Part shown: positions 1-35,345 of the stretch, piece by piece
Position numbering within the stretch: position 1 is the first letter of the stretch
How the letters are laid out: every line of letters begins with the position of its first letter
Source: Monocercomonoides exilis PA203
Taxonomy: Eukaryota > Protista > Preaxostyla
Direction of reading: 5' to 3'
Assembly (NCBI GenBank): GCA_001643675.2
Contig: LSRY02000032.1
Span: 1,126,041 to 1,190,040, forward strand
DNA: 64,000 bases
The notes under the pieces: model-generated
Seen by the model: only the letters and a program-made list of their open reading frames with translations
The model's database searches: none
What the model was told of the DNA's origin: nothing
Program-made: the position numbers and the translations under genes

Positions 1-3000
1 TTCACAACAGCGTCTTCTCCGTTCATTTCAAAGTCTTTCTTCGATGTTTGCTTGATTTGTGAATATTTGCTTTCATCTTTCCCACTTTCTTCCTCTTTTG
101 CGTCACTTGAGAAGTATTCATCTGGAATTTGCTCACTTTTCAGTCCTGTTCGAAGAGCTAGTCCTCTTCCTGTTCCTTCTGAGCTTTCTAATGAAGAGGC
201 AGCAGCAATTGTTGAAGGCACGTTCCTTGTTGCCTGCAATGGAGTGACGTTCAACGGGAGAACTATTTTTCGCAAGTGGGTTATGTCAGTCCACACAAAC
301 TCGTTCTGCCCACTTTCTTCGTCAGCAGTCATCAAGAGAATTCGTTCTATTCTCTTTGATTCTTCTTCCATTGCCTCCTTTTCCTTCTCTTCAGTCCATT
401 CACCTTTATCCATCAATGCCTTCCTCTCTCTTTCTTTCTCTTCCTCTTCCTCATCGCTTAAACCTCCTTCAACTTCCCAAACAAGGCCAATGCATTCACG
501 CTCAGTGTGAGAGCTAGCTATTGATTGCGTTTTCGATAAGTTTTCAGAACAACATCCTTCACTTGGCAAGCAAACAAGGACAGTCTGTCCAACTCTGACT
601 TTCTCACGACGCACAAAATGTTTAGCTGAAGATGTATCAACAGATGGCACAAATGGGACAACACCACTTCGATCAAGTTGTCCTTTCATGTAGCTGTAAA
701 GAGAATGGATGAACGTCGCATAAGCTTGTTCATCCACACCATCCAAATCTTCAATTGTGGTAATATCATCCGAAAGAAGCGCTTTTGATCCTTCATTTTG
801 AGTCAGACTTGTGCTCAAGCTGGAAGTTGATGGAGCCACAGAAACAGAAGAAGATGCTGATAATAGTTCTGGATCCTTCCTTCCGCTTATTTGCTGTGCA
901 GCAAGAAGTCTTTTCGCTGCGATTGCAGATTCTGTTTCGAGTGAACGGCCCAGCCACATCATTCCTGTTCCACATGCAGCCGATACAGTTCCACTCAAAT
1001 CTCCCACGAATGTGTTGATTGGCTGAGTGGGTGCTGAGTCAGAAGAAGGAGGAGTCTTAAGCATAGATAGAAGCTTGACTGACGGATGAAGCATCGAAGG
1101 AGATAAAAATGTTGAATCAACAACAGCCATTTCATTGCTCTTGGCTTCTGCAGTATCTGCTTTACTCGACTCGTTACTCCAATTTTCCAACGTTATTCCT
1201 TCGGGAATATCATCTTCTTTCTCTTTCTTTTCGCTTTGAGAGATGTCTTTTCCATCTTTCATCAACTTTGAATGAGACAAGAACAGACTTTCAACACAAA
1301 ATGAATAAAGTTTCAATTTCTTTTCTGGAATCGTCGGTTCTGATGCTTTTGATGTCGTTTCAGATGGTTTTCCAGTTTCAACTTCCTTTTTCTCTTCTTT
1401 TTCAGAATCATCAGTCTTTGAGCTGTCCTTTCCAACTGAAGAGTCATCTTTTTTAATATCTTCGGCTCCTATCAGCACATCAAGAATTGCTAAGGAAATA
1501 GAATCATCTTTAACATTGTCTTCAATTTCATCTTCTCCGAACAACGAAATCAATCCACTTTCATCATTCTTTATTGGCTCATGCACTTTTGGCATGCCAT
1601 ACACTTTCTTCGGGATTTGAGAAATTAATGTTTGCTCATACGCAACCAGATCTACAGCAGATGCATGAGTCGCCTTGGAAGCATTAACAGATAAAAGCGC
1701 TGGTTTTTGTTCGGAGGTGTATATCTTAATCTGAGCTGACCGCTCTCCTCCACTTTCCTTTGTCGAATCAGAGATACCAACTACAGCTGTGTCGCTTGCA
1801 TTGCTGGCTGTGCTATTAAACGGCAAAATACTGTTTTTGTTCTGAGATTCAATTCTTTGCTCTGCTTCAACAACGCGCTTAATGAGGCTTTCTTCTTCTT
1901 CTCTAATTCTTTCATTTGTTTTGCTTTCAATTTCTCCAATATTCGTTTCTTGTTTTTTTGAATCATCTTCCTTATTATCCTTCTGCTCGCCTTTAACTTC
2001 ATCTTTTTCTTGTAAAGTTTCATTTACCTTTGATATTTTTTCCTGCTTCTCCATTGCATGAGCCAGTCTTGTTCCAAAAACAGTTTCAGAAGGAATCTTC
2101 TTTTTACTGTTAACATTTGCTGCATTTGCACCAACTGGACATTCAGCAGCTTTTACAACAGCTCGCGAAGGCATATTAGCAGAGGCGCCATTCATAATCT
2201 TCCAGAAGTGGCTGCTTGTATAAGCGTCTTCTTCTGCGCTCTCCTCTTTCTTTTCTTGCTTGACGGACAAATAAGGAATAGGCGCTCCCAGAACAGGAAG
2301 TTCCTTTGTTAAGTCTTTCGTGAGTGCCTGTGAAGAAATGCTTTCAGACACCGAATATGAAGGAGGCGGTCCAAAGAACGTGGAAGGAGATTCAATGACT
2401 TCCATTCGAGACAGCCAATCCTTCTTTTCTTCTTCTTCCTCTTCTTCTGAATCATCACTTGAGCTATCATCTTCGTCTTCTTCTTCTTCCTCCTCTTCCT
2501 CTTCCTCTTCCTCTTCCTCATCGTCGTCGTCATCATCATCAGAATCAGAATCAGAGTCAGAGTCAGAGTCAGAGTCAGAATCAGAATCATCACTTCCTCC
2601 TAGCAAGCCCTCTCCTTTCGTCCAAAATCTTCTGAACTTTTTCTTTTTTTCAGTGTCTTTCGATTCTTTCGTTCTTTTCCCTGAACTCGAATCGGATAAA
2701 TCATTCTTACTTGCATCATCATCTGAATCATCTAAACCATCTGAATCAGCAAAATCTTTTTCTTCTATTCCTAACATTGCCCCGACCGTTTGTTTGTTGA
2801 TAGGAATCTCTCCCCGAAGCATCATAAGTATCACGTCATCATCAGTTAAACCCTTATCAGAGGAAGCTGAAGCCTTTGCAGATGCAGATTTCGTTGAGGC
2901 AGTTTCAGAAACATCACCATAATCGTTTTTATCGCTTTCATTCGTGTGCTCTTTGGACGTTTCCTCCTTTCGTAGAAACTGTCCAACATCAACTGGATGC

Positions 3001-6000
3001 TCAATGAAGCTGTGTGTCTGAAGAAGAAGCGAAAGAGCCATAAACAAATCGTCGCTTTCAATGTCTTCACTTTTTGTCACTTTGCAATCCTTATCACTTT
3101 TTTCTCCCTTCAAAGCATCTAAAACTGAAGTTGCTCCAGAAATAGGAGATACTCCTGTCTTTTTCAATGCAAATGTTGAAGCTAACAGACTCAGTGCTTG
3201 CTTTTCTGCTTCTGCTTCAATCTCCTTCTTTGCTAAAGCCAGTGCTTGTTCTTGCGTTATTGGATTCTTTGTGAATGAAGACGTAGCCAGTAACATCATC
3301 ATTCCATCGAAATATTCATTCTTTTTGCTGATTTCATTCGCACATTCAGATATACCCATGTCAGTTTCAGGTTTTGTATCTGCCACTTTTTCTTTTTCTT
3401 TTTCTTTTTCTTTCCCTTCGATCGTTTTGCTTTCGCTCCCAGATACTTCTGAAATAAGGAGTTTCAGAAGTTCTTCTTCGCTTTTGTCGGCACTTGTTTC
3501 TGAGGAAGCCACATCAACCGAAGAAGTTGCAATCTCTTCTTTTTCTTTGTTCTGTGCCTCAGTCTCTTCTGCTTGGTGAAGCCTTCCCATGTAACTGATG
3601 AATTTCCTTTTCTTTGCCCATTTCATTGCTAGTTTGGTGCCAATGAAGAACGGCGGAAACACTTCCTCTTCTGGACAGACCCAGATGTGATCACCAGGAT
3701 TTGGAATCTCATATAACTCCTTTTCATCATCGTCATCTTTACTGCTGTCTCCATCACCTCCAGCCACGCCTTCTTCATCCATAACAACATCATACATTCC
3801 TTCGACACCTTTGTATTTCTTGAACATCGCAGGCGATTCTTTCAATGAGATTGAAGGAGGCAAAATTGGATCGCACAAGCAAGGCCAGTTGCGATCGGTT
3901 GTTTCGTTGCAGTCGCAGAATCCGCGCGAGTGTAAAAACGTCATCCAGGGCTCGTGTTCAGGCTTCTTCTTCTTTTCCTTCTTCTTTTTCTGCTCGTCAG
4001 TTTTGTATGACTGGAATTTGTCACGGCGGTGATGCTGATGGTCGTGGCAGGTAGCCAGGCACACTGCACACAACCCTTCGGATTTTTTGAACTCGCAATA
4101 AACACATTCAAAGAATGCCATAATTCCACCTTTGTCGATAAGATCTGACCCAAATTTCCCAACGCCGATGGATTCCTCCAGGATTTTTGCTGGTTTGACA
4201 ACAACAGCCGCCTTCTTTCCATCGTCTTTGTGGCTGCTACTGTCACTTTCTGAAGCACCATGCACTCCGACTGTTGCTCCCCTCAAAAGACCTCTTGACA
4301 GAGCATCAAACATCGCTTCTGCAAGTCCATTGCCAGAGTCTTCCAAGCATTTCTTGAATCGTTTTTTCAGATCAGGTGAAATTGGCAACGCTTCCGCACC
4401 TTTTGGCTCAATCTTGTTCTTCTTGCTCTTTTTATGACCTTTCTTTCCTTTCTTCCTTTTTTCCTCCTCTTCCATCTCGCTCGGATCAACAAACAGATAC
4501 GCAGGATGTATTCTATTCAGCTTGGCAAGTTGCTTCACTTTCCTTTTAGGCGTCTTGCTATCAACGTGGACTGACCCGATATGCGGTCTGGCATGTCTCA
4601 GGCATATTCCTTCCTGCATGCACAGAATTGAACTCCACAATGAATCAGCCGAGGGGGTTTCAAACACATTGAGATGGATCTTAAATCTGTTGTCCAGTGC
4701 ACACGAAACAGCTGCCTTTTTCATGGTAATAGTTGTCGGATATATCGGAGAGAACACTTTCAACTTTAAAGATGAAGAGCCAAATGCAGACGGAGGTGGT
4801 GGAGAAATAGAATCTGAATCAGAATCTGAGAAATCTCCAGCCAGTTGAAATTCCACGTTTTCTCCTTCTTCGTCTTCTAAAGAGCTGTCATCGTCAATGT
4901 CAAAGAATATCGATGTTGCTCCGCCTTCAGCATCAGCAAATGGATCTGCCCCTGATGATGAAAACGATCCAATCGATGCTGGCGATGGAGCAGTAGATGA
5001 AAGAAGCGAAGACGCACTCGAAGAGCTTACCATGTTCCGCATTAAGTCACTTCGAGCCTTTTTGCCGCAAAACAGGAATATCGATCCGAAGTCGTTCAGT
5101 TTTAAAAGTGTGTGTCGTTCCATGTTTTCGCTTATAAGAGCTTCAGCGTCTTCTTCGTTGAGGGACTTCACTCCTTCAGACGGATGAGGCATCCCTTTGA
5201 TGAAAGTGGATGGGCTGTACTGATATTCCCATCGCTTGACATAAGCATGAGGTTCAATAGAAGAAGATTCAGCAGAAGAAGTCGATGATGATAATTGAGA
5301 TGAGGAAGATTCATCCGAATTCGCAGAATGGAGATAAGATGGATATTCAGTCAGACAGCCTTTGCCTAAGAACTTCTTTTTGCTTTCTGTGATTCCCGTT
5401 GGAGCGCCTACACCGCCACCCCATTTTTGTCCAGACAGCCTCAGACTTCTGTCTATCACTTTTGGGAAGTAGCAGATGATGCTGTCTGAGTCTGCATCAG
5501 GCACCACAAGACGAGCCCCCTTTGCAGTTGTGTCCAGCAGAGACAGCGCATGCAGCAGGCAGCGATTGTCACAAGGGGAAGTGATCAATATTCTATCGAA
5601 TTTGAAAAGTTGAGGAGACATTGATAGAAGCGAATCGACCATTGGGAAGAAGTTGATTGGAATGTCGGAGTCAATCTGGCTGTAGTAAGGAAGACTCAAC
5701 GTGAATGGCGATGTGTGCGCAGTCAAAGGCCTGCTGTTCTTCAGCTGATCAGCCAAACAGCAGGATTTTGTGCCAGATTTAGAAGATGATACAGAAGATG
5801 AAAGTTTTGTTGAATGACCTTTTCCGCAACCACATTTGATGTGCACTCCATCTTCACCATCACAACAGTACACGTCGTTCGGATTGACAATGCCAACCTT
5901 TCTTTCCCACTCAGCATATTCCTGCATCCTCTTTTCTGCTTCTTTGCAGTCCCATTCGTCATCTTCTTCCTTCTTCACCGACGGATTTTTCATTTTGACG

Positions 6001-9000
6001 TTCTCTTTCAGTTCCGAAATGAGATCGAAGTTCAACACAGACATGCTCTGCACAACAAACCCGCCTGGTGCAACAAGATTCGATGCAGCCATTCCGATGA
6101 AGTAAGGGTCACATGATATAACAAGCGTCCTCAGCCCAGGCGTCAGGTCAAGCGAATGGAGAAGGAACTCCACAAGCGCAGGTGGGAAGAAGTAAACATT
6201 GTGCTTCAGCTCTTCGACGGATACTGGAGATGACTTGTCTTTCTCCCAAAGTTTGAAGTTCTTTTCTAATGTGATCATCGGACATGATGTTGTAACAGCA
6301 GATATCACTCTCTGCGACACAGGCTCAAGAGCAGGAAACGGCAAGTTCTTTGCTTTCTCCACAAGCGAAGAAGAAGAAGAAGAAGAAGAAGACGACGACG
6401 ATAAGGCAGACTGCGATGTCTGTTCCTTTTGCTTGCGTGCTTCTTCTGAGTTCTTCTCCTGGATCATCGCATTCGCATGGTCCACCATCGAATTCGCCTT
6501 CCGCTTGCTTTCGAGCCAGAATGCTCCGTCGCTAAGCTTTTTGATCTTCTTTGAGCGAGGAAAATCAGCAAAAAGATCAAAAATGTCTTCATGCGAAATG
6601 AAGCATGGAAGGACACTCCATTCGCATTCGGATGGAAGAGGCAATGGTTGACTAACAAGAGGCGTTGAAACATCAGTTGAGGAAGATGAAGATGAAGATG
6701 AAGATGATGCTTCTTCTTTCTCTTCCTTCTTCTCTTCTTCTTTCTTTTCCTCTTCTTTCTTCTCTTCTTCCTTCTTTTCCTCTTCTTCCTTCTCTTCTTC
6801 CTTCTTTTCCTCCTCTTCTTTTTCAGTGCTTTCTTTATTATCATCAGTTTTGACAGGAATTCCTTTCTTTTCTGCCTCTTTGATTGATTCCTGGATTGCC
6901 CGTTCCAACTCCTGCTCAAACAAAAGATCTTCAGCTGAGGCAGGTTCTTTCTTTTTTTCATCCTTCTTTGCTTTTTTAAGTTCCTTCTTCTTTTTCTTCT
7001 CTTCTTCCTTCTTCTTCTTCTTTTCTTCTTTCTCTTTTTTCTTCTTCTGTTTTTCTGTCAGCTCAGCTTCTGCTGCAGCAGGCTTCTCTTTCTTCTCATC
7101 ACTCCACAAGCATCTTGGATCAACTGGAAGCGAAGGGTGTTTGAAGAACGAGATAGGCGCTTCTCCAACTTCGTCCTCTTCTTCTTCGTCTGCATCGTCT
7201 TCACCTTCTTTCTTCGCCTTCGTTTGATGTATGCCGCTCTTTGACTTCACCAAAACACGACGGCGCAGGTCAAATGAAAGAGGAGTCGTCAGAGACGGAG
7301 GAAGAGGCGGATGGAACTCTGTGAGTGCTTCAGTAGAGGAAGAAGAAGAAGAGGAGGAAGAAACAGAAGTTGAATGAGCATTGACCACAGGCAAAGGAGT
7401 GAGCAGGGAAACTGGCGGGAATGCTGAGCCAACGGTTGAGATGGGGAATCTTGCAACTGACGTTTCTTTGCAGTACAAAAGACATGTCGCAACATCCACA
7501 TGCTTTTTCTTTCCCATCCTGGCAATCGAGGCAAGCTCATTTCGGTTGAGGATCGCAAAGAAATATGTTCTGCTTTCTTTCTTCAGTTCCCTGTCTCGTT
7601 GCTTTGCTTCCTTCAGATCCTTCTTCCTCTTCTTCCTGGCCATCGCTTTCTCTTTCCTCTTGACTGAATCATCATCATCATCATCGTCATCGCTATCGTC
7701 TTCTCCATCTTCTCCATCATCATCACCTCCGCGGCATCCACAATCACAGCAATCAGCCAGCTTGCTTTTCACTCCGCATTCTGAGCAGCGGAATTCTGAG
7801 TTGTTCTTTTCTTTGATGAGCTGCGAGGGAAGCGACAGCACCTGTCCACACTCGCATTTGACGACAGACAGGATGAAGCAGCGCCTGCAGATGGAAAGGC
7901 AGGCAGTGGCACAGACATCGAAGAAGGAGTGCTCCCAGCTGGACAAAGTGGCATCCATCACAACAGGTGAGAAGGTTGTCAACGGAGCTGCCCCTGTGGT
8001 AGAGGCAGATGGAGAAAAGGACGGAGAAATCGAAGGCGAAGAGAAAGGTGATGGAGAAGGTGTTGATGGAACACTCAAAAGATTGGTGGTGTCTTTATTG
8101 GGAGACTCATAAAGAGATGTGCTAAGTCCCTTTTCGCCATCTTCAATGTGCTTCATAAGCATGTCTTTTCCAGTCTCAGAAAGCGAAAATGGAACAGAAG
8201 ATGCTGGAGCGATAATTCCATCATCCTTCTTCTTTTCTCCCATTTTCGACTTCACATCATCTGGAGCAATTGTCAGCTGCATTGTGATTGGCGTTTCGGC
8301 AAGCTCCTCCAAAAGAGCACCACATCGCATAGAAGTTGCAGCAGAGTTCTCAGCTTTTGCTTCTTTGGCAAACGATGAAGCAACAGAGAACAAAGAACGG
8401 CCTGCCAAAGGAGCAGTTGGTAGTGACTGAACAGACGATGACAACAAATATGAGACGAGCTCATGTGGAAGATCATTCAACACATTCATTTCGAGAAGTG
8501 ATCTGATAAATGAGGAAGATGAAATAGAAGCGGAAGATGCAACAAGAAGAGCTGTAAGAAATAGAGAGGAATCTGAAATTGTATTTACGTTTTTAGCTTC
8601 ATTGCTTTCTTCAGAAGATGAAAGAAGTTCATTTTTCTCTTTCATCTTTTGCGAATTTAGTTCATTCAAAACTTTCAGCATTGCATCTTTAATTTGAAGC
8701 ATCTCCACACAAACTTTCAAGTTCTCAGTGAATTTTCTGCAAATCTCTTCTTTTTTCTGGCTACAAGCTGTCTTTGAACAATCACATTCTTCTTTCATCC
8801 TTTCAATTTTCAAGCTGATAAATGGAACAGCCTTTGCCTTTCTTTTCATATCTTTGTCGCTGCAATCTGCATCGCAATCAAACAAAACAGAAGCAGTTGG
8901 CATTCCTTCAGAAGCTTGAATCACTGTGCCTGAGTGTCCAGTTGTGACATCCACAACTCTATCTCCGGTGCGAATAGACAACGACACATCAGACTGAAAG

Positions 9001-12000
9001 CCAACAGAATGGAACAAAACTAAAAGAATGTTTAATGCCTCATTTTTGTGCAAATATTGATTTATCTGCGAAAGACGAGGAACCTGAGACTCAGTTTTCA
9101 TAGCAGAATCTGATCCATTTGACGACTTGAGCCAAGGGAACATTGCATTAATTGCATTTGGCAACGAATTCACCATTGAATTAATTCTGTTGGATGTCCA
9201 GTCATTCCACTTGCTTCCAGCAACGTTTTCAGCAATCACTTTGACAACAGTATTTTCAGCAGCACGGCTGACTTTCTGCATCGAAGTGTATGTCTGCAGA
9301 CGAAACGGAACTAAGAAGAAGCGGATGAGAGCGTCCCAAAAGATGGAAAGACGCCTTTCTGTTTCAGGATCAACATCTGGCTTCTTCTTCTTCTTTTGCT
9401 TAGACTCTCCTTCGTCTGACTGAACTGAGTCTGCTTCACTTGCTTGAGTGCGCAGTTCAGACTTCACGGACAGCGCTGGAGATTTCGAGCTTGAACTGGC
9501 AGGCGCAGGGGAAACAGACCTTCTCTGGCTATGAGCGATAGCAGGCTTGCTGACTTCAACTGCTCCTTCGCTTTGACTTTTGCCTTCTTTCTTCAATTCG
9601 CTTTCTCGTTTCTGCAGCGCCTTCAACCACTGGACTCCAACTTTAGCAGTTGTGGAGTCGATGCCTGATGAAGTAAGAAGTGTGCTTAGCAAACCATTCT
9701 CTAATGAAAGAAGAGAAGCAACATGATCAGAATTCAAAGCAAGGAATGGTATGACTGTCTTGAAAAAGCTGATCGATGCATCAAGAAGCGAAGCTTTGGC
9801 AGATGAAGATGAAGATGAAGAAGATGCTCCTGTGGATGGCTGACTGGAAGAGAGAAATCGGACAGCCGAAGAAAGCGCTTCTTTCCTTTGTTGCGATGAA
9901 AACAAATAAGAATGAATTGTCTGTGCTGCTGTTGAAGGGCTTGGCTGATAGCGTGTAAGAAGCCATGTTCTTAGTCTGGCAAGATCCTCATCTGATTCTC
10001 CCGCAGATGTTGAAGAAGCACTGGAGGATTGCTGGTCAATCATTGACAGAGGAATAAGTGTGCTCATCCGGAAAGATGTTGGCAAGCTTGCAATAACCAG
10101 CAGCAAATCAAATAGATCGTATTCTTTTCCTTTTAATGAAACAGATACCCCACTTTTAGTGCCTGAAGGCGAAGATGGCTCATAAAAAGACAGTAAAAGT
10201 GGAATGCATGAGAGAGAGACAAGTTGAACGCGAGGCGATCCAAAAAGAGCACACAATGCCATTTCCTGAATTGCAGAGTATTTCTTGTTTGAAGAAGCAG
10301 ATGATGCAGATGATGCTGACAATGGCTGTTTTGCTTGATCTTTCAAAATGGATCGGAGTGTTTCGTGCGAAGAATATGTGCTAAGGATAGTTTTCAATGA
10401 GGTGAGAAGAGTAAAGATTGTTGTATCATCAATTGAATGGAATGATTTGTTTGTGTCATCTCCACAATCCTTCACATCACTTGAATTTTCAACGAAAAGA
10501 TGAGGCTGATAGAAATTGTTGAGCTTCAATGAATTGTCCTCTTCTTTTTCGTCACCTTCTGCCAATTTCTCGTTGACACCATCGTTTTCTTCCAACTGAT
10601 CTATCCATTGAATAAGTTCTTTTGTGTTGCTCGCTCCGATTCTGCCTGACTGGATTTCTCGAACAATACGACTCATTCCAGCAGATGAAACAAGAGCATC
10701 GCTTATTACCTCATCTGCACACACAGACAGACAGTTCAAAAGACAGTTAATTGCCTCCTTCGATAATGCCATCATCGATTCTGAACATTTTTTGGCTGAC
10801 TGTCGCTTTGAAGAGCATGTTAATTCACAAATCTCAACTGTCATTGCCTTCAGCACAGCAGCAGCGATTCGCTTCACCTGAATAATGTCAATTTCAACAG
10901 ACGACTGAACAGAAAGAATTGTCTTTACTGATTTGCACAAAGAAGGAATAATCAATGCCAGCTCCTTTTCAACAGCAGTCATTGTGCTGCTTCCATGAAG
11001 CAAGTTAGCGAAATGGCTGTTGAGTGTTGAAACACATTTAGTGAAGAAGATTGAGAAAAGAGACAGAAGATGAGAAACACGTGCAGCTTGTAGCAGAGCA
11101 ACTGGAGAATGAATAGAAGAAGAGGCCGATCCATCCTCTGTGGTTGAAATAGCCCTCGTGAATGATTCGATTTCGTTGTCAAGAACAGTCTGAAGTGTCG
11201 AAAACAGACGAATCATTTCAGCAAATTTCGACATTTCAGCTGCAGAAGGCGAACCAGCAGAAAACAACTTTGATTTTACAGTTTCCTCTGTGACTGACAG
11301 AATCAGCGAGCGAACTGACCTGCACAGCTCAAACAGCGAAAGAGACACGAAATGAGAGGACTTGGCAGAATAAGACGAAAGTGCACGCAATCCAAACAGC
11401 TGCAGCTGATTGCTCAGGCGCTTCATCAAAAGTGATCGGATAAAGCCAGGTGAATGGAAAGATGCAACAAAAGAGGTTGAAGATGCAGCTGATGAAGAAG
11501 CTGATTGACTCGAAAGATCAAAAGACATCCCAACTTTCTCAAATGCTGCTGAAGCATAAGACAAGATCTGATTGTCTGTGAAAGACAAGAAAAGCGAATG
11601 AGACAAAGAAGGAGAAAGAACCATTTCGTTCATGAGCTTCATTCTTTTCTTTTGATCTGCAATCACTTTATCCATTCCAGTCTTCAATGGAGCATCAGTT
11701 GCATCAATGCCACGAACATCTCCCATCAATTGCGCTTCAATAGAAGACAACACTTTGTCCATTATTTCACAAGAGATTCCTTCACAAGCAATTCTTTTGC
11801 ACAACAAGGCTGTCGTTGCATCATCAAGAACACTCCGATAAGAAGCTGATGGTCGTTTGCTGTTTGACTGAGAAGAAGAAGAAGACGAAGAAGAAGACGA
11901 AGAAGAAGACGAAGAAGAAGACGAAGAAGAAGACGAAGAAGAAGACGGAGTTTGATAAGATGACGGTATTTCATTGGAGCTCGTTTGAGCATCAGAATAT

Positions 12001-15000
12001 GGTGAAATGTGATCTGGAAGAGGAAGAGACGGATGCCGAAGAGGATTCATTATTTCCTTCAGCATTTGTCCAGAAAGACAAGACATCGAATGAGAAAGCA
12101 CGACACACCAAAGACCTTCTCCCACATCTTCATCTTGAACACGAGCAGAAGATGCAGATGAAGACGAAGATGACGATGCTGCTGATGAATCGTTCTTAAT
12201 CAACCTTTCGTATTCAAATGGTGAATTGCCAGGAGAGGAGTGTACGACTTTAGTTGGGTGGTTGATCTTCTTTTTGTCTTCTTCAACAAACATGCCACGT
12301 CCCATTTCGCTTGCTCTTCCGTCGACTCTTCCGCCAAACGCGCTGTGTGACGTGGGCATGATGGATGTCACGTCGCATTCAATTCCCCAGTCAACACCGC
12401 TTTTGTCAGAGAAGAATGAAAACACCAGTGCTGGCTGCATCACAACAATCTCGTCTTTCGGGAAGCTGTTGCCTGTGAAGAGATAAAGTCTCTTGCCTTC
12501 CTTTTTGTTTGTGGAAGGCAGACGAAGCGCAGTGAACTTCGAAGAAGAAGAAGAAGAACCACTTTTCTTGGCAGATGAAGGCGATCCTGCTGTGCCTGCA
12601 CTCGGAGCAGAAACAGAATGCTCAATCGCTTTTGCCATTTGCCATTTTGTTGGAAGTGAAATTGTGAAGAAGTCGTATCTTTGTTCTGTTTTGCACTGTT
12701 TGTTGAATCTGATACGATATCCCAGCGCAGACGGCACATAGAACACCTCCTTCCAATCCTCGTTGTTGAGATATGGATGGCTTGTTTCGATTCTGACTGT
12801 GGCAGATTGCAAAGAAACAGTTTCTGTATGATGCAGCAAACGATACTGTTCGGTGAAGAACAGAGGATATGGAACATTTGATGCACGTCTAACAACTTCT
12901 TGCTTTGATGATGAGCACGATTCTGAAGCAGAACTCTGAAGTGCCTTTAATTTATCAGCTGGAAATATCAATCCAAGCATATTGTCGAAGTATCGCTGGA
13001 AAATCAGAACGGGTTTCAGAAACACAGCTGCAGCATCTGTGGAAGAAGAAGAGAGAATTGCCATCATCACACGAAGCGGATGAACCAGCTTCCCAGCAAA
13101 TGAATGAAAGACCACAGACAGCAGTGAACGGCGAAATGAAACATTCACAACAGACGACGACGAAGAAGAAGAAGAGGAAGAAGAAAGCTGCTGGAGCTTT
13201 TTGGTTATCTTGTCGAACACAACACAGCTTCCTCCCAACACATACAGTGCATAGTGTGCAAAGAATGGGAAGAGCACATTAAATGCAGGGTTGATTGCTT
13301 CAGCTGGAACAATTTTGTTCTCAAAGCTTTGTGACCTCTGATTCTGAGAAGATAGAGTTTTCTTTGGCCTTGGAACAAGTCTGAAGAACAGAGAAAACAG
13401 CTGCTTTTGGAAAGAGCACAAGAATTCCAAAAGAGACGAATGGGACTTTTGACGCTCATCCAGTGAATTCTGACTGTCAATCAAAGAATTGAGATTAGAA
13501 ACTGTGCTGTTCACTTCGCTCAGAATCATCATCTGCCAAACGCGAACTGCATTCAAATAAAACGAAAGAGACGAGTCTGTATTTCCACTCTGGAGAGGTT
13601 CAAATTTTCCAAACAATGCTTCTTTCTCAATTTTGCTCACTGACATTTTTGCGCTTTGCTTTGTGAGCGATAGAGGTTGATAAAGTGAAGGGAAAAGTTG
13701 AGGACTTAAAGAAGCAACAGGAAGGAGATTTCTGGTCGAAAATGCAGATAGTGTCACAAACTTCATGTGATATGGAACAATTGCAAATATCCTTGTGATG
13801 ATTGATGAAACATCACAAGGAATATCAAACTGAAGCGAAGAAGATGCTAATAATGAAGTCGAAGATGCCTCTGGCGCTTCATTTCCAGAAAGGCACAGTG
13901 AATGGAAAGAAAGCTGAGCAGCATCTTTGTTTGATTTTCTTTGAGCGATTGCCTGTGTTAATATGTTTGCCAGAAGTTCCAGTGCTTGTGTTGAAGATTC
14001 TGCGAATGTGATCACAACCAAAAGAAGAAGCCCCACAGAATAAGCAGAAACAGCATCCAAAGCAGATGCAAACGGCAATTCTTTGCTTGCCTTTGCAGAA
14101 CAGAATTTATTCACTGCTTCAAACAAAGCAGATATATGCGAATCCAAAATCCCAACAGACTTTCTCGTGAATGGCGAATGAAACAGTGAAAGCACGTTGG
14201 CCCTTGAAATGCACATGACAGAATAAATGCAGCTGCAAAGATGTGCAATTTTCCTTTCAATTTCTTTGAGTTTTGTCTGAGACTTTGCTTCAGAAGCAAG
14301 TGATGTATACTCCTTTACTGCGTCGTTCAGAAGATTGTTGAGGAGATTTAGAGTTTCGGCTGCTTCCTCTACAAACTGCGACGATGCATCCAGAACATAT
14401 GGCGCAAACAATGTCATACATTCAAAAGAAGTCAAGGGCGATTCAGCTCCTGCAAATTGAGAGAAATTCTGTAAGTGGCTAAGCATTTGATGAGCAATCA
14501 CAAGTGAGTCAGTCTCCTTCTGCTTTTCATCCACCAGCGCCTTCGAAGAGGAATGCTGCATTTGACAATGATATTCTTGCTTCCTATCTTCTAATTGCAC
14601 CCATGCAGAAATTATTTCTTTGTGTTCTTCTTCTTCTCTCTTCAGAATCCCCATTCTCTGCTTCATTTTTAATCTGTGCAGCATCAGAAGCAAATCCACT
14701 GAGTCTTCGCTGCTTTGCTGTTGCTTGAGTTCTTCTTCTCCACAGCATGTAAGACTATTCAAATATTCATTGATTGTCATTTCAGCAGCTGTTGGAATGC
14801 TCTTAACTGAGTTATCAGTCAGTGGAAGAATCATCAATTTCTGTTCCTGTGCTTCTTTCTCCTTTTCTGTCTCTTTCAGCTGATCTTTTCCGTGATTATC
14901 CTTTTTCGAAGAAGATGAGTCTCTTTTGAAAAACAATGCCTCTGACGACCGAGTGATGAGCACCTGGTTCACTCTATCGAAACAGACAGGACCAGACTGA

Positions 15001-18000
15001 AGAGTGAAATTTATAGACAGTTCGATGTGCGGCTCCATCTCAATTTCTATTGCTTCTACTTCCCTTTTCTGAGCTGATTCGTTGAATGAAGACGAGGCAG
15101 AAAGAGAAAACATCATGTCCTCTTCGCTGTTTGCACCACAAGCACTGTCTCTGCACAAACTGCACTGCTTCTTGTTGGAATCGAGTTTTGTGTTCTGATC
15201 TATCTCCTTTATCGCATCATCTATGTTCGCTCTCAGATTGTATTGCACGAGTGGCTCATTCAACTGTGCAGATGTGAGGCAGAAGGCATATCCATCTGAA
15301 AAGATGCTTCCTTCGAGCAGATGCTTTTTGGTAAGAAGACGAATCTTGTTGATCATCGGATGAGACGGCGCCAGAGGCATCCTCGTCAGCTTGTGCGAGG
15401 CGCGGTGCAGATGGTTTTCTCTGCCGGTTTCGTAGCATTCGGGGCAGACGAACACTGCTCTGGTATTGATGTTGTCGTATGTGAAGTATGATAAAGTAGA
15501 TGATAAATGCTCCAAATTGGCAGATGGCTTTCTCATCTCCTTTTGCAGCTCTTCATCGCTGTGGATAGACTCTTCACCTCTACTCCCAATCCTCACAAAA
15601 TCTTCCCATTCGCGGCGTGTGCATTCTGTGCAACAGAACTGTACGTCTGGCGAGAGAGCTCTTCCGCACACGTTGCACGATTCGAGTGAGACATGATTCG
15701 ATGTCGAGAGAAGATGGCGGCTCTGCACACGCCATTCAGACAGCTGTGGCAGTGTGTGAGTGTTCTGTGCAAGTGGCAGAGTCTGACTGAAGACGGTGCA
15801 TCTCCTATAAACAGTCACCAGGATAAATGGCAGTGCCTCGTTGGCGCTGTGTACAAGCGATGCCAAATGAAGCAGATGTTCACCATCAGTGCCGAAGCGT
15901 GCCACCTCCGAATAGCCCATCTTCCGCAGCTCACGTGGCGTCAAACCCGTTTTCTTCTTCTTTGCAGCATTCTCGTTTTGCGTAATTTCAGATTTTGATT
16001 GAGCTTTCTCTTTTTCTGAATCGTCAAGCGAGTTTGAATTCTCTTCTATCTCTTCCTCCTCTTCCTCTTCCTCTTCTTCACTTATTTCGCTGGAATCGTC
16101 CATCCAGCTGTCTTCTTCATTTGAGTTGCTTCCTTCTCTATCAATCTCATTTTCAACAACTCCTTCTGAAGTCAACGTATTTTGTGACAAATGATCATCG
16201 TCTTCTTCTCCATCATCTTCATCTTCTGCTTCTTCTTTTGCTTTTCTCTTTTCTTCTTCTTCACTCTCTTTTTTCTTTGTCTTGTCTGTTTCATGTTTTT
16301 CTTTTCTATCCTTCAGCTCGACTTCTTCTTCATCTATCTCTGAATCAGAATCTGAAGCAAGATCATCATCTCCTTTCTTTTTCCCTTCAACATTGTCTTC
16401 CTCTTCCTCATCCTCGTCTCCTTCCTCCTCTCCATCACCATCGCTTTTATCCTTTTTCCCTTCTCTTCCACTTTCTCCAGTTGAAGCAGCATTATCAGCA
16501 CCAGACGATGCCTCACCGCTTCCTGTGTCATCTTCCTTGCTTTCCTTTGCAGCTCTTTCTCTTCCTTTGAGCGTCGAAAGCTGCGCGTGCTGAAGGAGTG
16601 TTTCGCGGAGAACAGGCGAATACGATGTCAGCTGTGCAACCTCGTGGAGCATCGAAGGAAGCGTGACAAACGAAAGTGATGGCTCCTCAAATGGACTCTG
16701 AGATCCTTTTGAATTGCAGGAAGATGGAAAATTCTCTTTTGAAGAAGAATTACGCTCTTTTCGTTCTTTTCTTTCTTTCAATACCATCTTCAACCCTTCT
16801 GCAGTGTAGCATTTTTCGACACATCTAAGCGATTCTGTGTCAAATCCAGAAAAGACGCACTGGCTGTTCGAACTGTTGTTGAAGGAGGAAGAAGAAGATG
16901 ATGATGCAAATGAACTATTTTGCAAATTGTCGCTTTTAAGGAGCATGTGTGAAAAGAAGGAACCAGAAGAATGGTGAAAAACAATCAATTCTTTATTTGG
17001 AAAAACTAACGTATGAATGTCGCAATCCCCCCATTCCTGACCATCTTTTTCTCCATTGTTGGGCATTGCTCTTTCTTTCCCTTTTAATTCATTCAAGTCC
17101 AATGATCCACTAACGTCAATTACATTTCTTTCTGTTCTTTCAGAGGAAGAGGTGTCATTGTTCTCTCTTCGAGCTTCATCAACTCTGCCAGCAACTGTTC
17201 CCTGAAATCCGGAGCCAATCTTTACTATCAATCCATTTATGTGCATAAACACATGCGCACCATCGCTTGCAATTCCCTTTAATTTTTTGCGCTGAATTTT
17301 TTCATCGAGAAAAATACGCTTTTCATTCGCTTTTGTTGGAGGCGAAATAAGCGATACTTCCATTGGAGTTGGCGATGAAACAAGAGAAGTGAATGGATAA
17401 AATAGAGACCTCCTCCAGCTGTTAAAATCGATAATATGCTTATGCTGATGTGCCAAAAACTGATGTAATGTAGATGTAGTACGCAAAAAAGCTTTTTCGT
17501 CTTCGATAACCAATTTATAATGTCTCAAAATTTCTTGTACAGCCATTAAAAAATAGTGTTGTTTCCCAGTTGTCACTCCTAAAGTGATGAGAAAAGGAAT
17601 TAATATTGTTTCAAAATGTTTATTTCCTGAGCATGTCTTCATTTCTTTAATCACCTTATCAAATCCACGATAACCTTCGTTTGATAATTTTGCTAATGTT
17701 GATGGAGTAAAACTTTGCAGAATATTAAGTAATGCACAGAACATTTCATCTGAAGTTTCTGGAAAAGCACTTTTTAACGTTTGAGCAATTGTGCTGCTTA
17801 AATTAAGTGCGAGCTGAATTGATGTTTCTCCACTTTTCTTTTGACTTTTTGATGACTTTTTATCAATTTTTTGCTTCAATTGAACCTGGCATTAACAAAT
17901 GCAAAAAATAAAGTTAGCGTTCTGACAAAACAAAATATTAAAAAATTTGAAAATTCAAACATCATTTTCAATTTCTCGTCTTGAAATAACTGTCATTCGC

Positions 18001-18612: not shown

Positions 18613-21600
18613 ATGGATTCTTTATCCAACAAGGATAAAGATTTAGCAATGATATCGCAAGTATTCTTGAGTACAAATTCTTCAAATAAAAATAATGAAT
18701 CCAGCCGCGATAAATATACTTTTTCTCAAAATGCTAGCGATTTGCACCTTGAAAATTCGCTTATTTCAACAACTGACACTCAACAATTGTGCAAAGAGCA
18801 ATTGCAGGTTGAAGCAAATTGTGATGCAACTACAGAAAAATCTTTATATCAAGATAAATCAAAGTATTTCAAACATCGCAATAGCTTTATTTCAGACAAT
18901 GAAAAATCTGAAAATGAAAAAAACGATAAAAAATTCGATCATTTGAGTCCCGAAGGACTTATTTTACAAAACGATAGAAAAAGTGAAAACAGCATTAAAC
19001 GTCAACAAAAATTAAAGATAAAAGTGAAAAAGGTTGAGGAAGCAGAAAAATTTTCGGGTCAGATTGATGATGCTCAATTGAATGTTGATCAACGTCAACC
19101 TTCACGGAGCAATATTTGTTCTGTATCATCTGCAAGTTCTTCGCAATTTCCTCATTCAGTTACAAGGTCAAGTCACAAAGAATCAATTAATGCTTCTCGC
19201 ATCCAAGGAACCGGATATCTTATTCAATCTGCAAGTTCTCGTTCGTTGGTAATGTCGGAATTTTCATCTTCAAACACCGCAAAATCAACCATTTTTCATA
19301 ATTCACCGGCATTAAAAGAAAGGCAATTTGCACTGAGAGAGATTCTGAACATGGAACAAGTATTTATTGAGCAAATGAATCATCTGATTATTGTATGCAA
19401 ATGCTCCTTCGAGGAATTTTGTGAAATTTATTCGAAACTTTTCACTGCTATTGAGGACACTTTTTTCTTTTGACGAATTATTTTATTTTCTTATTTTTCT
19501 GAGACTTATGGCTTTTTTTTAAATTTTATTGTTATCCTTTGATTAAAAAATGTTATGTATTTTTCGCCTTTTCTTTCTGTTTGTTTTGTTTCAGTATTAC
19601 AAGATGCCTCTTGTTCGCTCGATGGATCACTTTTCCTTGACACCTCGTGATTTGCGTGTTCTTTTCCGCAACGTGTCTGTTCTGAGAGACATCACAACGC
19701 ATCTGCTCCGTTCACTTCAGAACTGCGTCGAATTCAACCAGAAAAACGAGATGGAAAAGAAGAAGGAAGAAGAGAGGCTTCTGAAGGCAGCACGCGAATA
19801 TGTCGAGTGCGCTGCTCGCAAATCTTTGTCAGCTTCAAACATGCAAATGCAACAAGTCTCAACAGATTCATCATCATCATCATCATCATCTTCTTCTTCT
19901 TCTTCTTCTTCTTCTTCTTCCTCTGCTGTTCCTGTTCCTCCTCCTCCACTACTCCTTCCTGTGCCTCGTCTGCCAGCCAGCAACGAGCAGCTGAACAGCG
20001 TTGGCAAAGTGTTCTCTGCCATTTCGCATCTGCTCACTCAGTACTCTCCTTATGTTTCATCCCAGCCACAGGCAAACGAGTTTCTCAACCGGCACATCAA
20101 AACAAACAAGCATTTTCGCGAGTTTCTGAGCCAGACGCAGGCGATGCTGCCGATGTACAAGTTTGATCTGAGCACATATCTCGCATATCCTGTTCAACAC
20201 GTGGTTCGATACCAGCTGCATCTGGAGAAGCTGATACAGACATACGAAGCAAGAGAAAAGGAGCTGCTGGCAGAAAAGGAAAGGGCAAGAGAAGAAGAAA
20301 AAAAGGATGAAGAAGAAGATAAGGGAGAGATTGAAGAATCAACATTTGAAGCAGAGCATTCACAATATCAAGCATCAAAAGATGGAGCAGATGAATCTGA
20401 GTCTGAAAGAGAAAACATTCCGAACAGACCAACCGAAGAAGAGAAAATGAATGCGAAGATCGAGAGGGAAGTGAGAAAGCAGGAGAGGCTGATAAAAGTG
20501 TACCAGCGCAACATGTGTGCAGAGGATGAGAAGAGAGAGGAAGAAGAGCTTCGTGATGCTTTGAGTCGGATTCGGCAAGTGACAGCGTCGATTGACCATT
20601 CGAAGCAGGAGCAGGATGAGAAAGTGCGTGTGGTGGAGATTACGAGGGAGATGCAGCGGGGAGAGGAGATTGCTGGCAGTTTGATTGCGCCAAGCAGACG
20701 GTGTCTGGATGAATGTGTGGCAGAGGTGATGATTGAGAGGCTGGAGACATTCTGCAAAGTGAGCACGAAAAAGAGGGGTAGAGCGAAGGAGAAGGAGGCA
20801 CACGAACAGAATTCTCATGAGGAAGATGGAGAGAAGAAGCATTTTGCAGGAAATGACATTACAATCACAGAATCATCAGCTTTTGCGAAAGTGAGTCAGC
20901 AAGCAACTCAAAAGAATGCAGGATTACAGCCACAAACACAGAAAAGCTTTTCTTCAGATTCCTCGTTTGGAGAAAGCGAACTACAAAACAATAATAAGAG
21001 ACAAGGGGTGAATGGAGTGTCTGATTATCCATCTGATTTTGAATACAACATCACTTCCTCGAGAAAGCATTCAAGAAGTAGAAATGGAGAGAAAGACAAC
21101 ATGACAACAAATGTGAACAATCGATCTGGTGAAAGAAGAGCAGTTTCTCCGTCCAGCCAGCCATCGTCGCGTGTGTCGGGCTCGCCAACACCAACAACAG
21201 CCTCTTTCTCAACAAATCATTCAGACAGCAGACAAATTGTGTACAGATCAGAACTGGCAGCAAATGTGGTTGTGTTCAACGATGCGCTGATGCTGAACAG
21301 ATACAGCAAGAAAAAGAGAGAGAATGTGATTCGACTGAAACGAGAGCTCAAAACGAAGAAGGCGAAGGACCAACACATTGCGTCTTCTTCTGCTTCAGAT
21401 GCGTCTTCGTTTGTGTGGCAGACGTTTGAATGTATCTTTCCATTGCAGTTTGTGAAGACTGTTGTGCTCATCGACGACAACCAGACAGACTTCGTTCTTG
21501 TCAACGAAGAGATGAATGGGCAGAGACAGAGACAGAGCAATAACACATCCAGCAGACCGAACTCTGCTTCCATTTCTCCCCAGCCTCGCAGCACAGATGT

Positions 21601-24600
21601 GTCTCCCTGTGACAATTCAGACAGACACCTTTCTGTTTCTCCCCAACCCCTCTGCCCAACTGGTATCTCGTCAAACACTCCCTTCTCTCCTCTTCCTCCG
21701 TCTTCTGTCTCTTCCCTCGTCTCTGCCTCTCCCACTTTCTCTTCTCCTTCTCCGCGTCAGCCCAACCGCTCCGGCTTCTCCAGCTCTCATTCGCGTTCTC
21801 CTTCTCTGTCCCCTCCTTCGCATTCATCCATTTCTCCCCAAACACCTTCTCCTCAGCTGAAGCCTGTGGAAGTTCCGACTCTTCAGCTGCCTCTCTTCTC
21901 TTCTGCTTTTGCGTCTGCCTCGCCAACAGCCAATGCTTCTGAAGCACACGTTTCTCGTCTGCCATCTTCGGTCTTCCGCTCCAAATTCTGCCTGACAATC
22001 ACACTCGACTTACCTTCTTTCATCGACCCTACTTTTGTCGATTCTGCCACAAAATTCCCTCATTTGTCTCATCTTCCGCGGGGAGCAGAACGGAAATTCC
22101 GACATTCGGCAACGATTCGGCTGCTGTTTGAAGAGGAAGACAGTTGTTTACAGATGAAGGAGGCTGTACAGAAGGCAGTGAATGAATGCAAAATGAACAG
22201 AGAACAGCAGATTGGCTTTGATGCGATGCAGGAACAAAACAGCAAATACACAAAGAAAGAGAGAGGGAAGAAGATGAGAACGAAAAACATGAAAGGGAAA
22301 AGAGAAAAAGAAGGAAATGACAACATGTCAAAAACAGATGAAGGAGTTATAAGTGACCAGCCAAGTGAAGAAGATGAGGACGGGGTGGAAGTAATGGATG
22401 ATGATGAAGAGGAAGAAGAGGAGGAGGAGGAAGAAGAAGAAGACGATGATGACTTAGTTGTTCTTGTGGATGTGTTGGATCAGACACTTGCACGCCATGA
22501 GCGTTCTTCTGCCTGTGAAGCATTTTCATCATCTTCCTCGTCTTCTTCATTTCTTTCTGAGTTGCCTTCATCCTCTGACCCCTTTTCCTCTTCATCATTT
22601 ACTCCTTCTTCTGCCCTTCGCTCTTCTCTTTCACTTTTCTCTCCTTTTTCTTCAGCACATTCTTCATTCACTTTCTCATCGCATCCACTTTTCCCACCGC
22701 CAACAGCAGCGCAGCTGAAGTATCAGTCGATGCAGTCACTTCTGCAGAACGAAGAGAACTATGTTGAGCAGCTGAAGAACATTGAGACCTTCTTCTATCG
22801 TCCTTTGCTGCAGTCGTTTGAACAGCTAAAGAAAAAAGGCAAAATGACATCTTCGTTTCGCTCAAAGTTTTCAAAGGCGCCAGAAAAGAAAGAAAATCAG
22901 AAGATGACATCTCCATCAGATGATATAATTGCATCTCCAATGGATTATTCAAGTGATGAATATGTTCCATTCAGTGGAAATGTGTCCTGTTCGTCTAGAG
23001 CTTCTTCGCCAAGGTTGATGGCATCTGCTCCACAGGCACCTCCATCTCCCACGCTGACTCCTCGTTCAGCTGCTGAATCGTCCTCTCTTCTTTCTGATGT
23101 TCTGACTGAAGAAGACATCCGCTCTGTCTTCAATTCACTAACATCTGTGTTGGGCGTCCACAAATCCTTCCTTGTTCAGCTGAGAGATGTCATTCAGACA
23201 CGAAATGGAGTCGGATTGAGTGCCATTTTGTCTGCTTTTTCGCAGCAGATGAAGATTGTCCTGCCGTTTGCATTGGAGCAGCCGAAGAGGAGGGAGATAC
23301 TGGCGAAGTGGAGAGGAGGGTCAGCTGTCTTCAGAGAAGTGGTGAAGAAAGGGGAGGAAGAGGTGTGGAACAAGGAGAAGAGGAAGATCAAAGAGAAGAG
23401 CAAGAAAAAGCAGGAAAGAAGAGAACATGAGAAATCAATGGAGAAAGAGTGGGAAAAGGAATGGGAAGGCGAGTGTCGCAAAAAAGGAATAGACAACTCA
23501 GAAATTGAGAGATTTCGAGAGAAATTACATGAAATGCTGGAGAAGATTAACAGACAGCGCGAAGAAGAGGAAGAAGAGCGGGGAGAAGATGTTTTATCAT
23601 CCATTTTGACATTCGAAGAGATGCTGCAGCTTCCACTCAACCGTCTGTCGATGTATGTGCCTTTGATACGTGCAATTATCACGCATGTGCAGGATGAGTC
23701 TTCAAAAAATGAAGAAATGAATAACGGAGTCAAATCTGCCAATCGCATTGAGAATTCTTTTGATGGCAAATTGAAGGCATCTCAAACGAAACAATATCCA
23801 CAAATAACATCAGATGGGCTTCCATCGCAATCTTTGCCTTCGTCTCTTCTTTTGCTTTCCTCTCCGATGGCATCGTCAGTCACCATCAGCACTTCAGAAG
23901 ATGAGGTGATGGGGTTGGAAATGGCGTGTGCCACATTCTCGCGGGTGAGTGACGAAGTGAGAGAAGCCATCCAGCGGAACGAGGCAAAAAGGAAGCTGAT
24001 TGCATTGATCAGTGAATATCCACTCAGTTCAGGACAGAGGAATGTTGTGTTGGCGCCAGCGAGAGGAGTGGTGGTGGATGTGTGTGTGGAGCAGATGGCA
24101 GATGTGGAAGAGGAATGTGACGAGGTGGATCTCTTAGCAGCACTGAAGAAGAGCATCGGGGTGGAGCTGGTGGAGGGAGAGAAGGAGAAAGAAAAAGAAA
24201 AAGAAAAAGATAAAGATAAAGATAAAGAGAAGAATGAAAAAGAGGAGAAAGAAGATAAAGATAAAGAAGAAGAGAAAGAGAAAGAGAAAGAGAAAGAAGA
24301 TAAAGAAGAAGAAGCAAAAGATAGAAAAGACAAAAAGAAAGATAAAAAATCAAAAAATGAAAAACATCAAAAAAGCAAAAAAGGTCTCAAAGAAAGCAAA
24401 AGTGCAATTTTTATTCCAATTCCAACAAAACAGCACAACTCCAATTTGAAGCACCACAACAAAAGAAAACATCAGCACGAAAAAGAGGCATATGACTCGG
24501 ATTATTCAAAAGAGAATAAAAAAGATTCAAAAGAACTCCGCAGGAAAAATTCTGGTTTTCAACAAGTTTCACCTAAAGAAATTGATGAATTTGATGACAA

Positions 24601-27600: not shown

Positions 27601-28447
27601 AAGGAAAAGGAAACTCAGACTGTCAATGAAAGAAGAATATGCAAATGAAAATGGTTTTGCTGAGGCAACAAAGCTTGTTCTGTGCAATGATGCGTTGATT
27701 GTGCTGTCTCTTGAGCCAGCACACCGAATGCATCCATTCAAAAGGATAATCAATCTGAGATATGTTGACTGGTTTGAAGTGGTTGATGGAGAAGGGGAAG
27801 ACAAAAGACTCAAAGAAGATGAAGAGAAGAGGAGAGCTATGTTGGCACACAAAGAAAGAAGATGGACAAAAGGAATGGAACAACAGGATGAAGATGAGAC
27901 AAGTGAAAGTTACGAAAGAAAGAAAGAGGAAGAGAAAAGCGAAAGCAGTTTTGAACTTGTTGGAAGCAATTTGTATCTGTTTCGTATGTGTGTTGTGGTG
28001 GAATCACAGAAGACGGACATGTCATTTGCAGATAAAACAGGAAAAAATAAGCAAAACTCACGTGAAAAGAAATATCATTTCGAAGATCTTAATGATTCTT
28101 CATTTGGATATTCATCCCATTCAAAATATGATGATTATCGGTCGCAAAGTCGTTCTTTTACAAAGCTTTCTCATCTTCATTCACATGCTCGTCATCTTCA
28201 TGAATCTAAGTCATATTCTCATTTGTATTCTCCCTCATCTTCCGAGTGTTCTTCTGATCCTTCGTCTGATTCTTCGCCAAAACAGAAAGGTAAACTTCGA
28301 AAGAATCTTTGTCCATTTTGTTTTCGCTTATTTTCCTTCTCTTTTCCATCGAAAGAAGAACTTCATCGTTTTGCTTGGAGTTTCAGTGATGTCGTGAAGG
28401 AGCTGAGAGTGCGTGCCAGAAAAGAAGCTGAAATGAAGCGGTTTTAG
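18613..28447 (+). CDS. Tandem DH-PH Rho guanine nucleotide exchange factor (~3,210 aa); exons 18613-19392 and 19595-28447
   Basis: Splicing the 202-nt phase-0 intron GTATGC(19393)..CAG(19594) rebuilds a Dbl-homology start, ERQFALREILNMEQVFIEQMNHLII|YYKMPL...DLRVLFRNV, ending LSTYLAYPVQHVVRYQLHLEKL. Second DH: LLQNEENYVEQLKNIETFFYRPL...DIRSVFNSL...MLQLPLNRLSMY. PH-like strands VVVFNDALML and LVLCNDALIV, with a C-terminal FSFPSKEELHRF helix. Confidence 0.88.
26728..26811 (+). repeat. (TCA)n(TCT)n trinucleotide microsatellite encoding a run of about 28 Ser
   Basis: Directly visible. A similar (TCA)n(TCT)n tract lies at ~19868-19924. Confidence 0.9.
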
Positions 28448-34345: not shown

Positions 34346-35345
34346 GTCAACTTTTTAATGGGACTTTTTTCTTTATTGGCACTTTTTTGTTTTTGCACGC
34401 CAATCATTCAAAAAAGCTAGATGGACCTCAACACTCGGACGAGGGTGCTGATAAAACAAATTCATTAAATTACCGGTTTGTTTTTTAAATTTTGTTTAAT
34501 TTTCGTAGAGATACAGCAATTTTTAATTTATTTTGAAGTGACTTTTTTCAGCCGAAGAAGCGTTTCACAAATTTTTGAAATATATTTTTTAAAACTACTA
34601 GCATTTTCCTTTTAATATTCAAAATCTTAAGTTTAACAACTTGTTTTTTCTTCATTTTTTCACATTTCAATTTTTAATCAACATGCGAATACATTTTTGA
34701 AAATATCTTTGTTATTAAAATGAAATGTTAAAAATAAAAAAATGATATGAAAAATTCACACTCTAATAAAGAAGTGTGGAAAAGGTTGGACTGAAAATGA
34801 TTTTTTTTATCTCACACAGGTGAATGGTCACAACATTGAATGATCTGAGATAAAACTTATTCTATTTTAATGTGTTGAAAGCAAATAGAAAATTTTAATG
34901 TTCACCCTTTTCCACACTTCTTTATTAGAGTGTGAATTTTTCATATCATTTTTTTATTTTTAACATTTCATTTTAATAACAAAGATATTTTCAAAAATGT
35001 ATTCGCATGTTGATTAAAAATTGAAATGTGAAAAAATGAAGAAAAAACAAGTTGTTAAACTTAAGATTTTGAATATTAAAAGGAAAATGCTAGTAGTTTT
35101 AAAAAATATATTTCAAAAATTTGTGAAACGCTTCTTCGGCTGAAAAAAGTCACTTCAAAATAAATTAAAAATTGCTGTATCTCTACGAAAATTAAACAAA
35201 ATTTAAAAAACAAACCGGTAATTTAATGAATTTGTTTTATCAGCACCCTCGTCCGAGTGTTGAGGTCCATCTAGCTTTTTTGAATGATTGGCGTGCAAAA
35301 ACAAAAAAGTGCCAATAAAGAAAAAAGTCCCATTAAAAAGTTGAC
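34346..35345. repeat. Long inverted repeat: 440-bp arms (34346-34785 / 34906-35345) with a 120-nt spacer
   Basis: The arms read as exact reverse complements by eye (GTCAACTTTTTAATGGGAC... / ...GTCCCATTAAAAAGTTGAC). Paired coordinates have a constant sum, so there is no net indel. Confidence 0.95.

Follow-up and report, generated by a model that had tools for sequence, protein, structure and literature searches.

How does a predicted methyltransferase fold that has lost its cofactor-binding motifs come to sit in the middle of a giant HECT-family protein, and what might it do there? The question is raised by a locus of Monocercomonoides exilis, a mitochondrion-free protist, within a stretch of 64,000 nucleotides that we call the window. 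The genome searched was the M. exilis assembly of 82.3 Mb in 101 contigs (PMC8767320), in which the window occupies G000:C28:1126041-1190040. A giant open frame covers 5,963 codons of the window (3-17891, minus strand; residue numbers of the window protein are counted from 17891) and continues past the left edge to G000:C28:1120571, its C-terminal end being a degenerate class I HECT domain. An earlier note on this DNA had read part of the frame as a degenerate fold of protein-L-isoaspartate methyltransferase (PIMT), a catalytically dead sensor of isoaspartate (isoAsp) or of damaged proteins fused in cis to an E3 ubiquitin ligase scaffold; the peptides that it quoted can all be found in a single minus-strand frame, the giant open one. 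The reading that we favour, with slightly better than even confidence, is that the segment derives from PIMT and serves a giant HECT scaffold as an interaction or architectural module, working free of S-adenosylmethionine (SAM, also called AdoMet).

The segment is predicted to be a class I methyltransferase fold because of its family homologues, the profile-profile scores and two AlphaFold models, and not because of the window segment alone. In single-sequence searches that segment had no methyltransferase match in Pfam or the PDB, and its scores against hidden Markov models (HMMs) of PIMT and TrmI were marginal, the same score being reached by 5-7 of 1000 shuffles. By contrast, the scores of the family profile against methyltransferase profiles far exceed those of shuffled-column controls. 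AlphaFold builds a Rossmann core both from the window domain (predicted local distance difference test, pLDDT, of 82-88 in the core blocks) and from a compact homologous domain of Blattamonas (pLDDT 84-95). For both models the top Foldseek match is the PIMT structure 2yxe, with E values of 6.6e-4 (window) and 1.9e-6 (Blattamonas). Both reach Z scores of 13-14 in VIA, where 2yxe is again best for the window model (Z 14.1 over 177 residues, root-mean-square deviation 4.1), and all of the best 50 matches per structure search are methyltransferase-fold proteins. ESM Atlas feature searches, taken as leads only, returned methyltransferase clusters at 0.85-0.88. The AlphaFold check that the earlier note had proposed thus found a class I fold, and its expectation that PCMT-family proteins would head the matches was borne out by Foldseek for both models; in VIA a PIMT structure heads the list for the window model, with PIMT, TrmI and CbiT tied. 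A chance match of motifs is ruled out by the family and the models, and a wrong-frame artefact by the single long frame, which is conserved in paralogues.

Nine copies of the domain were recovered, comprising the window copy, three M. exilis paralogues (frames of 7,469, 7,152 and 4,209 codons on contigs C14, C8 and C47, one of them carrying the database name MONOS_985), three Blattamonas proteins and two further contigs. When 1.84 billion proteins were searched with a four-sequence profile, six matched (the C14 paralogue, three Blattamonas nauphoetae proteins, one ENA protein and one fragment) and no full match lay outside the nine copies; a profile of that size leaves room for more distant relatives. 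Word-indexed protein searches with the protein region and with the family alignment gave no matches, and a scan of JGI metagenomes no relatives. With the window copy and its two closest relatives left out of the training set, an HMM still recovers the window copy at E 4e-33, and the hydrophobic core columns are conserved although overall identity is 17-37%. Every named source of the domain is an oxymonad (Monocercomonoides, Blattamonas), and the database names of the member proteins mention HECT only, or nothing; the nine domains gave an unresolved tree. The proteins that carry the domain span 3,400-7,800 amino acids, and the compact Blattamonas version of the domain itself, at about 200, makes it readily testable. 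This version lies at about residues 2570-2830 of KAK2959130.1. Four RNA-seq runs of one study contain 0.99-1.00 of the words from window positions 4000-9900, and this region is therefore transcribed. As a side observation, a contig of SRR8661008 holds the full domain (671-1996) in one 442-codon frame only when TAA and TAG are read as Gln, a code that would fit Streblomastix; the database protein of this contig is an 82-residue fragment called with the wrong code.

The motifs by which such folds hold cofactor and substrate have been lost throughout the family. The earlier note had seen the Gly-rich loop replaced by SCDPYF, and this replacement proves to be family-wide: no homologue keeps GxGxG, the central Gly being Asp and the third Gly a bulky residue in all nine copies, while the first survives in five. 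The acid of beta1 gives way to a hydrophobic residue in every copy, so that none contains the (E/D)xGxGxG form of motif I. Nor does any carry Asp or Glu at the tip of beta2, the residue that holds the ribose of SAM in Rossmann methyltransferases at large and that M.HaeIII cannot do without (PMC4777477). Only the Pro of pre-motif I (TISxP) is retained, and the Ser that hydrogen-bonds isoAsp in PIMT, where the pre-motif I Thr and Ser contact this residue (PMC11522691), is absent from all nine copies, with Thr in its place in two; in the window copy the pre-motif I Thr/Ser are replaced by Tyr/Phe. The proposed GDG..G motif fared worse: DGEDG (5847-5861) was rejected as motif II, lying in a disordered, non-conserved insert of about 100 residues that the other copies do not share, whereas the true motif II position (window 5625-5654) reads D-S-L in the window copy and is variable in the others. 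A [YF]x[PG]-like column that follows a variable insert in the alignment may correspond to the post-III FVP. With the SAM contacts lost in nine of nine copies, the domain is very probably devoid of activity, as had been suspected, and from these sequences we infer that it does not bind SAM. The same genome encodes a canonical, intron-containing PIMT on contig C14 and a Trm61 on C23.

As to the branch from which the fold came, the PIMT-like assignment stands as membership of the PIMT/TrmI group of class I methyltransferases; within this group PIMT ancestry is probable, but not settled. DSSP assigns no helix between beta5 and beta6 in either model (strands E378-383/E388-392 in the window model and E179-184/E189-194 in the Blattamonas model), in keeping with the PCMT1 family, in which beta6 is an antiparallel strand (PMC12590147), and at odds with TrmI, which has a helix after beta5. 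The profile of the C-terminal half aligns with PIMT in register at a score of 21-22, against null means of 10.6-11.7 and null maxima of 16.7-20.8, but scores with TrmI at null level only. Likewise, beta4 ends in Thr/Leu, as in PIMT, and not in the Asp-x-Pro of TrmI. PIMT chains align with the window model over 160-177 residues, including the upstream elements, which are helical and fit PIMT, and TrmI chains over 131-145; residues 38-397 of this model superpose on 2-192 of 2yxe (177 residues), whereas TrmI chains start no earlier than model residue 115. Matches to methyltransferase families in Pfam and NCBIfam are all weak and include PCMT, pcm and FxLD, never GCD14; no member reaches the PF01135 cut-off, the best E values being 0.074-0.085, and the window copy has no match.

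Several results pull the other way, towards a descent from the TrmI/Trm61 (or CbiT) branch. Trm6 is a dead partner or RNA-binding module in such a system, and the oxymonad domain could have come to act likewise. The profile of the N-terminal half favours TrmI (49.5 against 41.9), as does the whole-core profile in local mode (48.5 against 38.8) and in global mode (35.3 against 33.6); the Z scores of PIMT, TrmI and CbiT lie within 1 of one another, and with the Blattamonas model it is TrmI that leads in VIA, by less than 1; the TrmI HMM outscores the PIMT HMM in seven of eight members; the top PDB profile matches, not significant, are the TrmI-type 1o54 and 2b25; and the majority of structural rows from the ESM Atlas are TrmI. 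The lead of TrmI in the N-terminal half is inflated, because the PIMT profile set is bacterial and without the loop that precedes beta2 in eukaryotic PIMT (eukaryote-type PIMT yielded one fragment). Together with the missing helix after beta5, the null-level C-terminal half and the end of beta4, this leaves a TrmI origin unlikely. In its N-terminal half the domain strongly resembles the TrmI/Trm61 tRNA m1A58 methyltransferases (PF08704), down to the loop that precedes beta2. With the PIMT/PCMT1 family (PF01135; 2yxe, 4o29, 1i1n, 1dl5) it shares the class I Rossmann core, the beta5-beta6 hairpin, the gap-free beta3-beta4 spacing (N ... FD.I), the Pro before the helix to beta1 and probable N-terminal helices. 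From PIMT it differs in lacking GxGxG, the beta1 and beta2 acids, GDG and the pre-motif I Ser, in its large inserts, in being embedded in a giant protein and in falling under the Pfam cut-off.

The protein that carries the domain belongs to the HECT family, and to that extent a fusion in cis to an E3 scaffold is upheld; the window copy itself, however, has Ser at the catalytic Cys. Its C-terminal HECT scores 31 bits with PF00632 (cut-off 23.9) over part of the N-lobe only and matches the intact HECT of the C8 paralogue in blastp. Relative to intact homologues this region (G000:C28:1120571-1122040) has lost the N-lobe part that binds E2 and gained an insert in the C-lobe, and Ser7761 stands, at a weak HMM score, in gap-free register with the HTC motif kept in C8 and in the Blattamonas proteins P0003 and P0004. 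Because of this Ser the window copy is probably a pseudo-HECT and not an active ligase. Among solved structures the best match of the C8 HECT is HECTD3 (136 bits against 82 for the next), and it is via HECTD3 that the class I affinity comes; a kinship with KIAA0614/HECTD4 is possible. Given the HECTD3 match, sequence similarity places the family with the class I HECTs (HERC1/2, KIAA0614/HECTD4, HECTD3; PMC3673628), with which it shares a very long N-terminal scaffold and from which the window copy departs in its catalytic Ser and missing E2-binding part. CUB-like modules and the UBR-box-like finger are common to most family members, a similar Cys motif lying downstream of the domain in the other seven long ones. 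HECT domains also occur in other very long frames of the genome, at C22:400810 (10,324 codons), C5:1558538 (11,405) and C36:661217 (7,239), none of which matches the pseudo-methyltransferase profile.

Under the scenario of a SAM-free module, a PIMT gene would have been fused mid-way into a giant class I HECT protein in a common ancestor of Monocercomonoides and Blattamonas at least, and the fused domain retained through later duplications, keeping its seven-strand Rossmann fold while losing SAM binding and methylation. It would then serve as a folded protein-interaction or architectural module, docking a partner or packing within the scaffold. In the intact paralogues the domain may help to position or recruit partners for HECT ubiquitylation, and in the window copy, with its apparently dead HECT, the whole protein would be a non-catalytic scaffold or regulator. 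The precedent is CI-PIMT, a structural subunit of complex I in Paracoccus denitrificans, where a canonical PIMT does the repair (PMC11522691). This protein and RPA2580 of R. palustris (PMC11522691) are likewise dead PIMT folds, with the pre-motif I Thr/Ser and motif II Asp/Gly replaced and a canonical PIMT alongside, and CI-PIMT (8qby chain t) aligns with the M. exilis model over 174 residues at Z 12.4. Unlike the oxymonad domain, both are stand-alone bacterial proteins without a ubiquitin link, and we infer independent origins. By analogy, CI-PIMT is the closer precedent than PCMTD1. Besides the results that point to TrmI, two points weigh against this scenario: the Asp found in every copy within what was the Gly loop, together with Asp after beta4 and beta5, suggests a kept site and not mere packing, and the scaffold role is drawn from precedent.

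The first of these points feeds a different, improbable explanation, in which the old active-site face has been re-tooled for another ligand (a basic peptide or degron, a polyamine, a metal ion or a metabolite) and the domain reads substrates or signals for the ligase. Rossmann folds bind ligands at the C-terminal edge of the sheet. It is at this edge that Asp occupies the central Gly position in nine of nine copies and follows beta4 and beta5 in six of eight each, along with an invariant Pro and Asn. The Asp after beta4 begins the next helix in the model, however, possibly as a simple helix cap, and the neighbouring residues vary.

A scaffold or binding module also appears more likely than the sensor of damaged proteins that the earlier note had in mind, in which a dead isoAsp-binding domain, convergent with PCMTD1, hands damaged proteins to the HECT domain. 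A PIMT-type fold does lie in cis with HECT (intact in C8, P0003 and P0004), the pre-motif I Pro is invariant, a post-III remnant is possible, and the lack of a methionine cycle in oxymonads (PMC10703272) could favour a SAM-free reader. PCMTD1 and PCMTD2, substrate receptors of CRL5 (PMC12590147; 9oma), indeed resemble the oxymonad domain in being PIMT-like, without repair activity and tied to the ubiquitin machinery. PCMTD1 nevertheless serves poorly as a model. Its motif I and post-I, both gone here, are intact, and it recruits CUL5 via a SOCS box, whereas the oxymonad E3 module is a HECT in the same chain (Pfam scans of the window protein gave no SOCS box match, no separate search for a diverged box being made); it also ranks only 44th for the window model (9oma, Z 11.9). 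Since PCMTD1 binds isoAsp only with AdoMet (PMC12590147), the analogy is weak. The isoAsp-contacting residues of pre-motif I are replaced (PMC11522691), and HECT is broken in at least two of the four M. exilis copies and absent in a third. With the AdoMet site and the pre-motif I Ser lost in all nine sequences, an isoAsp or damaged-protein sensor is not supported and seems very unlikely. Improbable, too, is the wider proposal that oxymonads put the PIMT fold, in cis to HECT, to use in recognising damaged or modified proteins without SAM, with the dead-HECT paralogues as adaptors or decoys. If true, it would be a second, independent link of a repair fold to degradation, and reading of isoAsp without SAM would answer a question raised in PMC12590147, namely whether further E3s are directed at proteins damaged spontaneously. 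It is extremely unlikely that the domain is an active methyltransferase with an unusual SAM site: the fold is kept and five of nine copies still have the first Gly of motif I, but the beta1 acid, the second and third Gly, the beta2 acid and motif II have all disappeared.

Precedents exist both for dead PIMT folds and for a PIMT fold linked to an E3. The combination of HECT and pseudo-methyltransferase appears to be new, because text searches of the open literature found no description of a HECT ligase with a methyltransferase-like domain; the word 'methyltransferase' is absent from the main text of the HECT survey PMC3673628 and of a 2026 review. The oxymonad domain would add a case of a PIMT-type fold reused without catalysis, after PCMTD1 and the Paracoccus CI-PIMT; so far the evidence points to an architecture of narrow distribution whose function is uncertain.

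Table 1. Features of the giant frame, its pseudo-methyltransferase domain and its paralogues (window positions unless a contig is given).
Feature	Position	Strand	Remarks
Giant open reading frame	3..17744	-	First Met at 17744 is codon 50 of a 7,787-codon open frame; about 7,740 amino acids
CUB-like module	12330..12830	-	C1r CUB match, E 1e-4; second copy beyond the left edge
Upstream helices superposing on the N-terminal helical part of PIMT	6285..6533	-	Tentative; pLDDT low to moderate
Pseudo-methyltransferase core, pre-motif I to beta6	5463..6194	-	Open-frame residues 3900-4143; leave-out HMM E 4e-33
Pre-motif I equivalent	6174..6194	-	YFFPPAL against TISxP; only Pro kept, Ser lost in 9/9 copies
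beta1 and former motif I	6099..6128	-	TLVISCDPYF against VLEIGTGSGY; beta1 acid lost, central Gly to Asp, third Gly bulky
PGG turn and beta2 (post-I)	6039..6068	-	Asp/Glu at beta2 tip in 0/9 copies
Variable insert	5682..5996	-	Holds DGEDG (5847-5861); disordered in model, pLDDT <50 over most
beta3, true motif II position, beta4	5577..5654	-	Invariant N ... FD.I; gap-free register with PIMT; G-D-G reads D-S-L
beta5 (RLVVP), then directly hairpin and beta6	5463..5519	-	No helix between, by DSSP of both models; PIMT-type topology per PMC12590147
Possible beta7/post-III remnant, [YF]x[PG]-like	5211..5237	-	Tentative; after second insert; alignment only; outside the confident part of both models
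UBR-box-like Cys/His finger	3867..4106	-	Downstream of the pseudo-methyltransferase domain; zf-UBR E 0.0017, 18.9 bits, under cut-off 25.2
C14 paralogue	G000:C14:2463112-2485518	-	Ends before the HECT C-lobe
C47 paralogue	G000:C47:881540-894166	-	Asp/Ser-rich tail, no HECT
C8 paralogue	C8:367864-389319		Sole intact HECT among the four M. exilis copies

Upstream of the domain, at about 7730-7960 of the window (minus strand), lies a second Cys-rich finger with C..C pairs; blastp blocks near residue 3310 show it conserved in the paralogues on C14, C8 and C47. Rfam at its gathering threshold gave no match in window positions 17900-64000. An inverted repeat with 463-nucleotide arms, 98% complementary and 74 nucleotides apart, occupies AT-rich DNA at 34346-35345. 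A clathrin heavy chain is encoded on the plus strand at 37542-42924 in two large frames, split near 40655-40900, and a RhoGEF-domain protein of 2,965 amino acids (19550-28447, plus strand) lies near a MyTH4-RhoGAP protein (29994-32375, minus strand).

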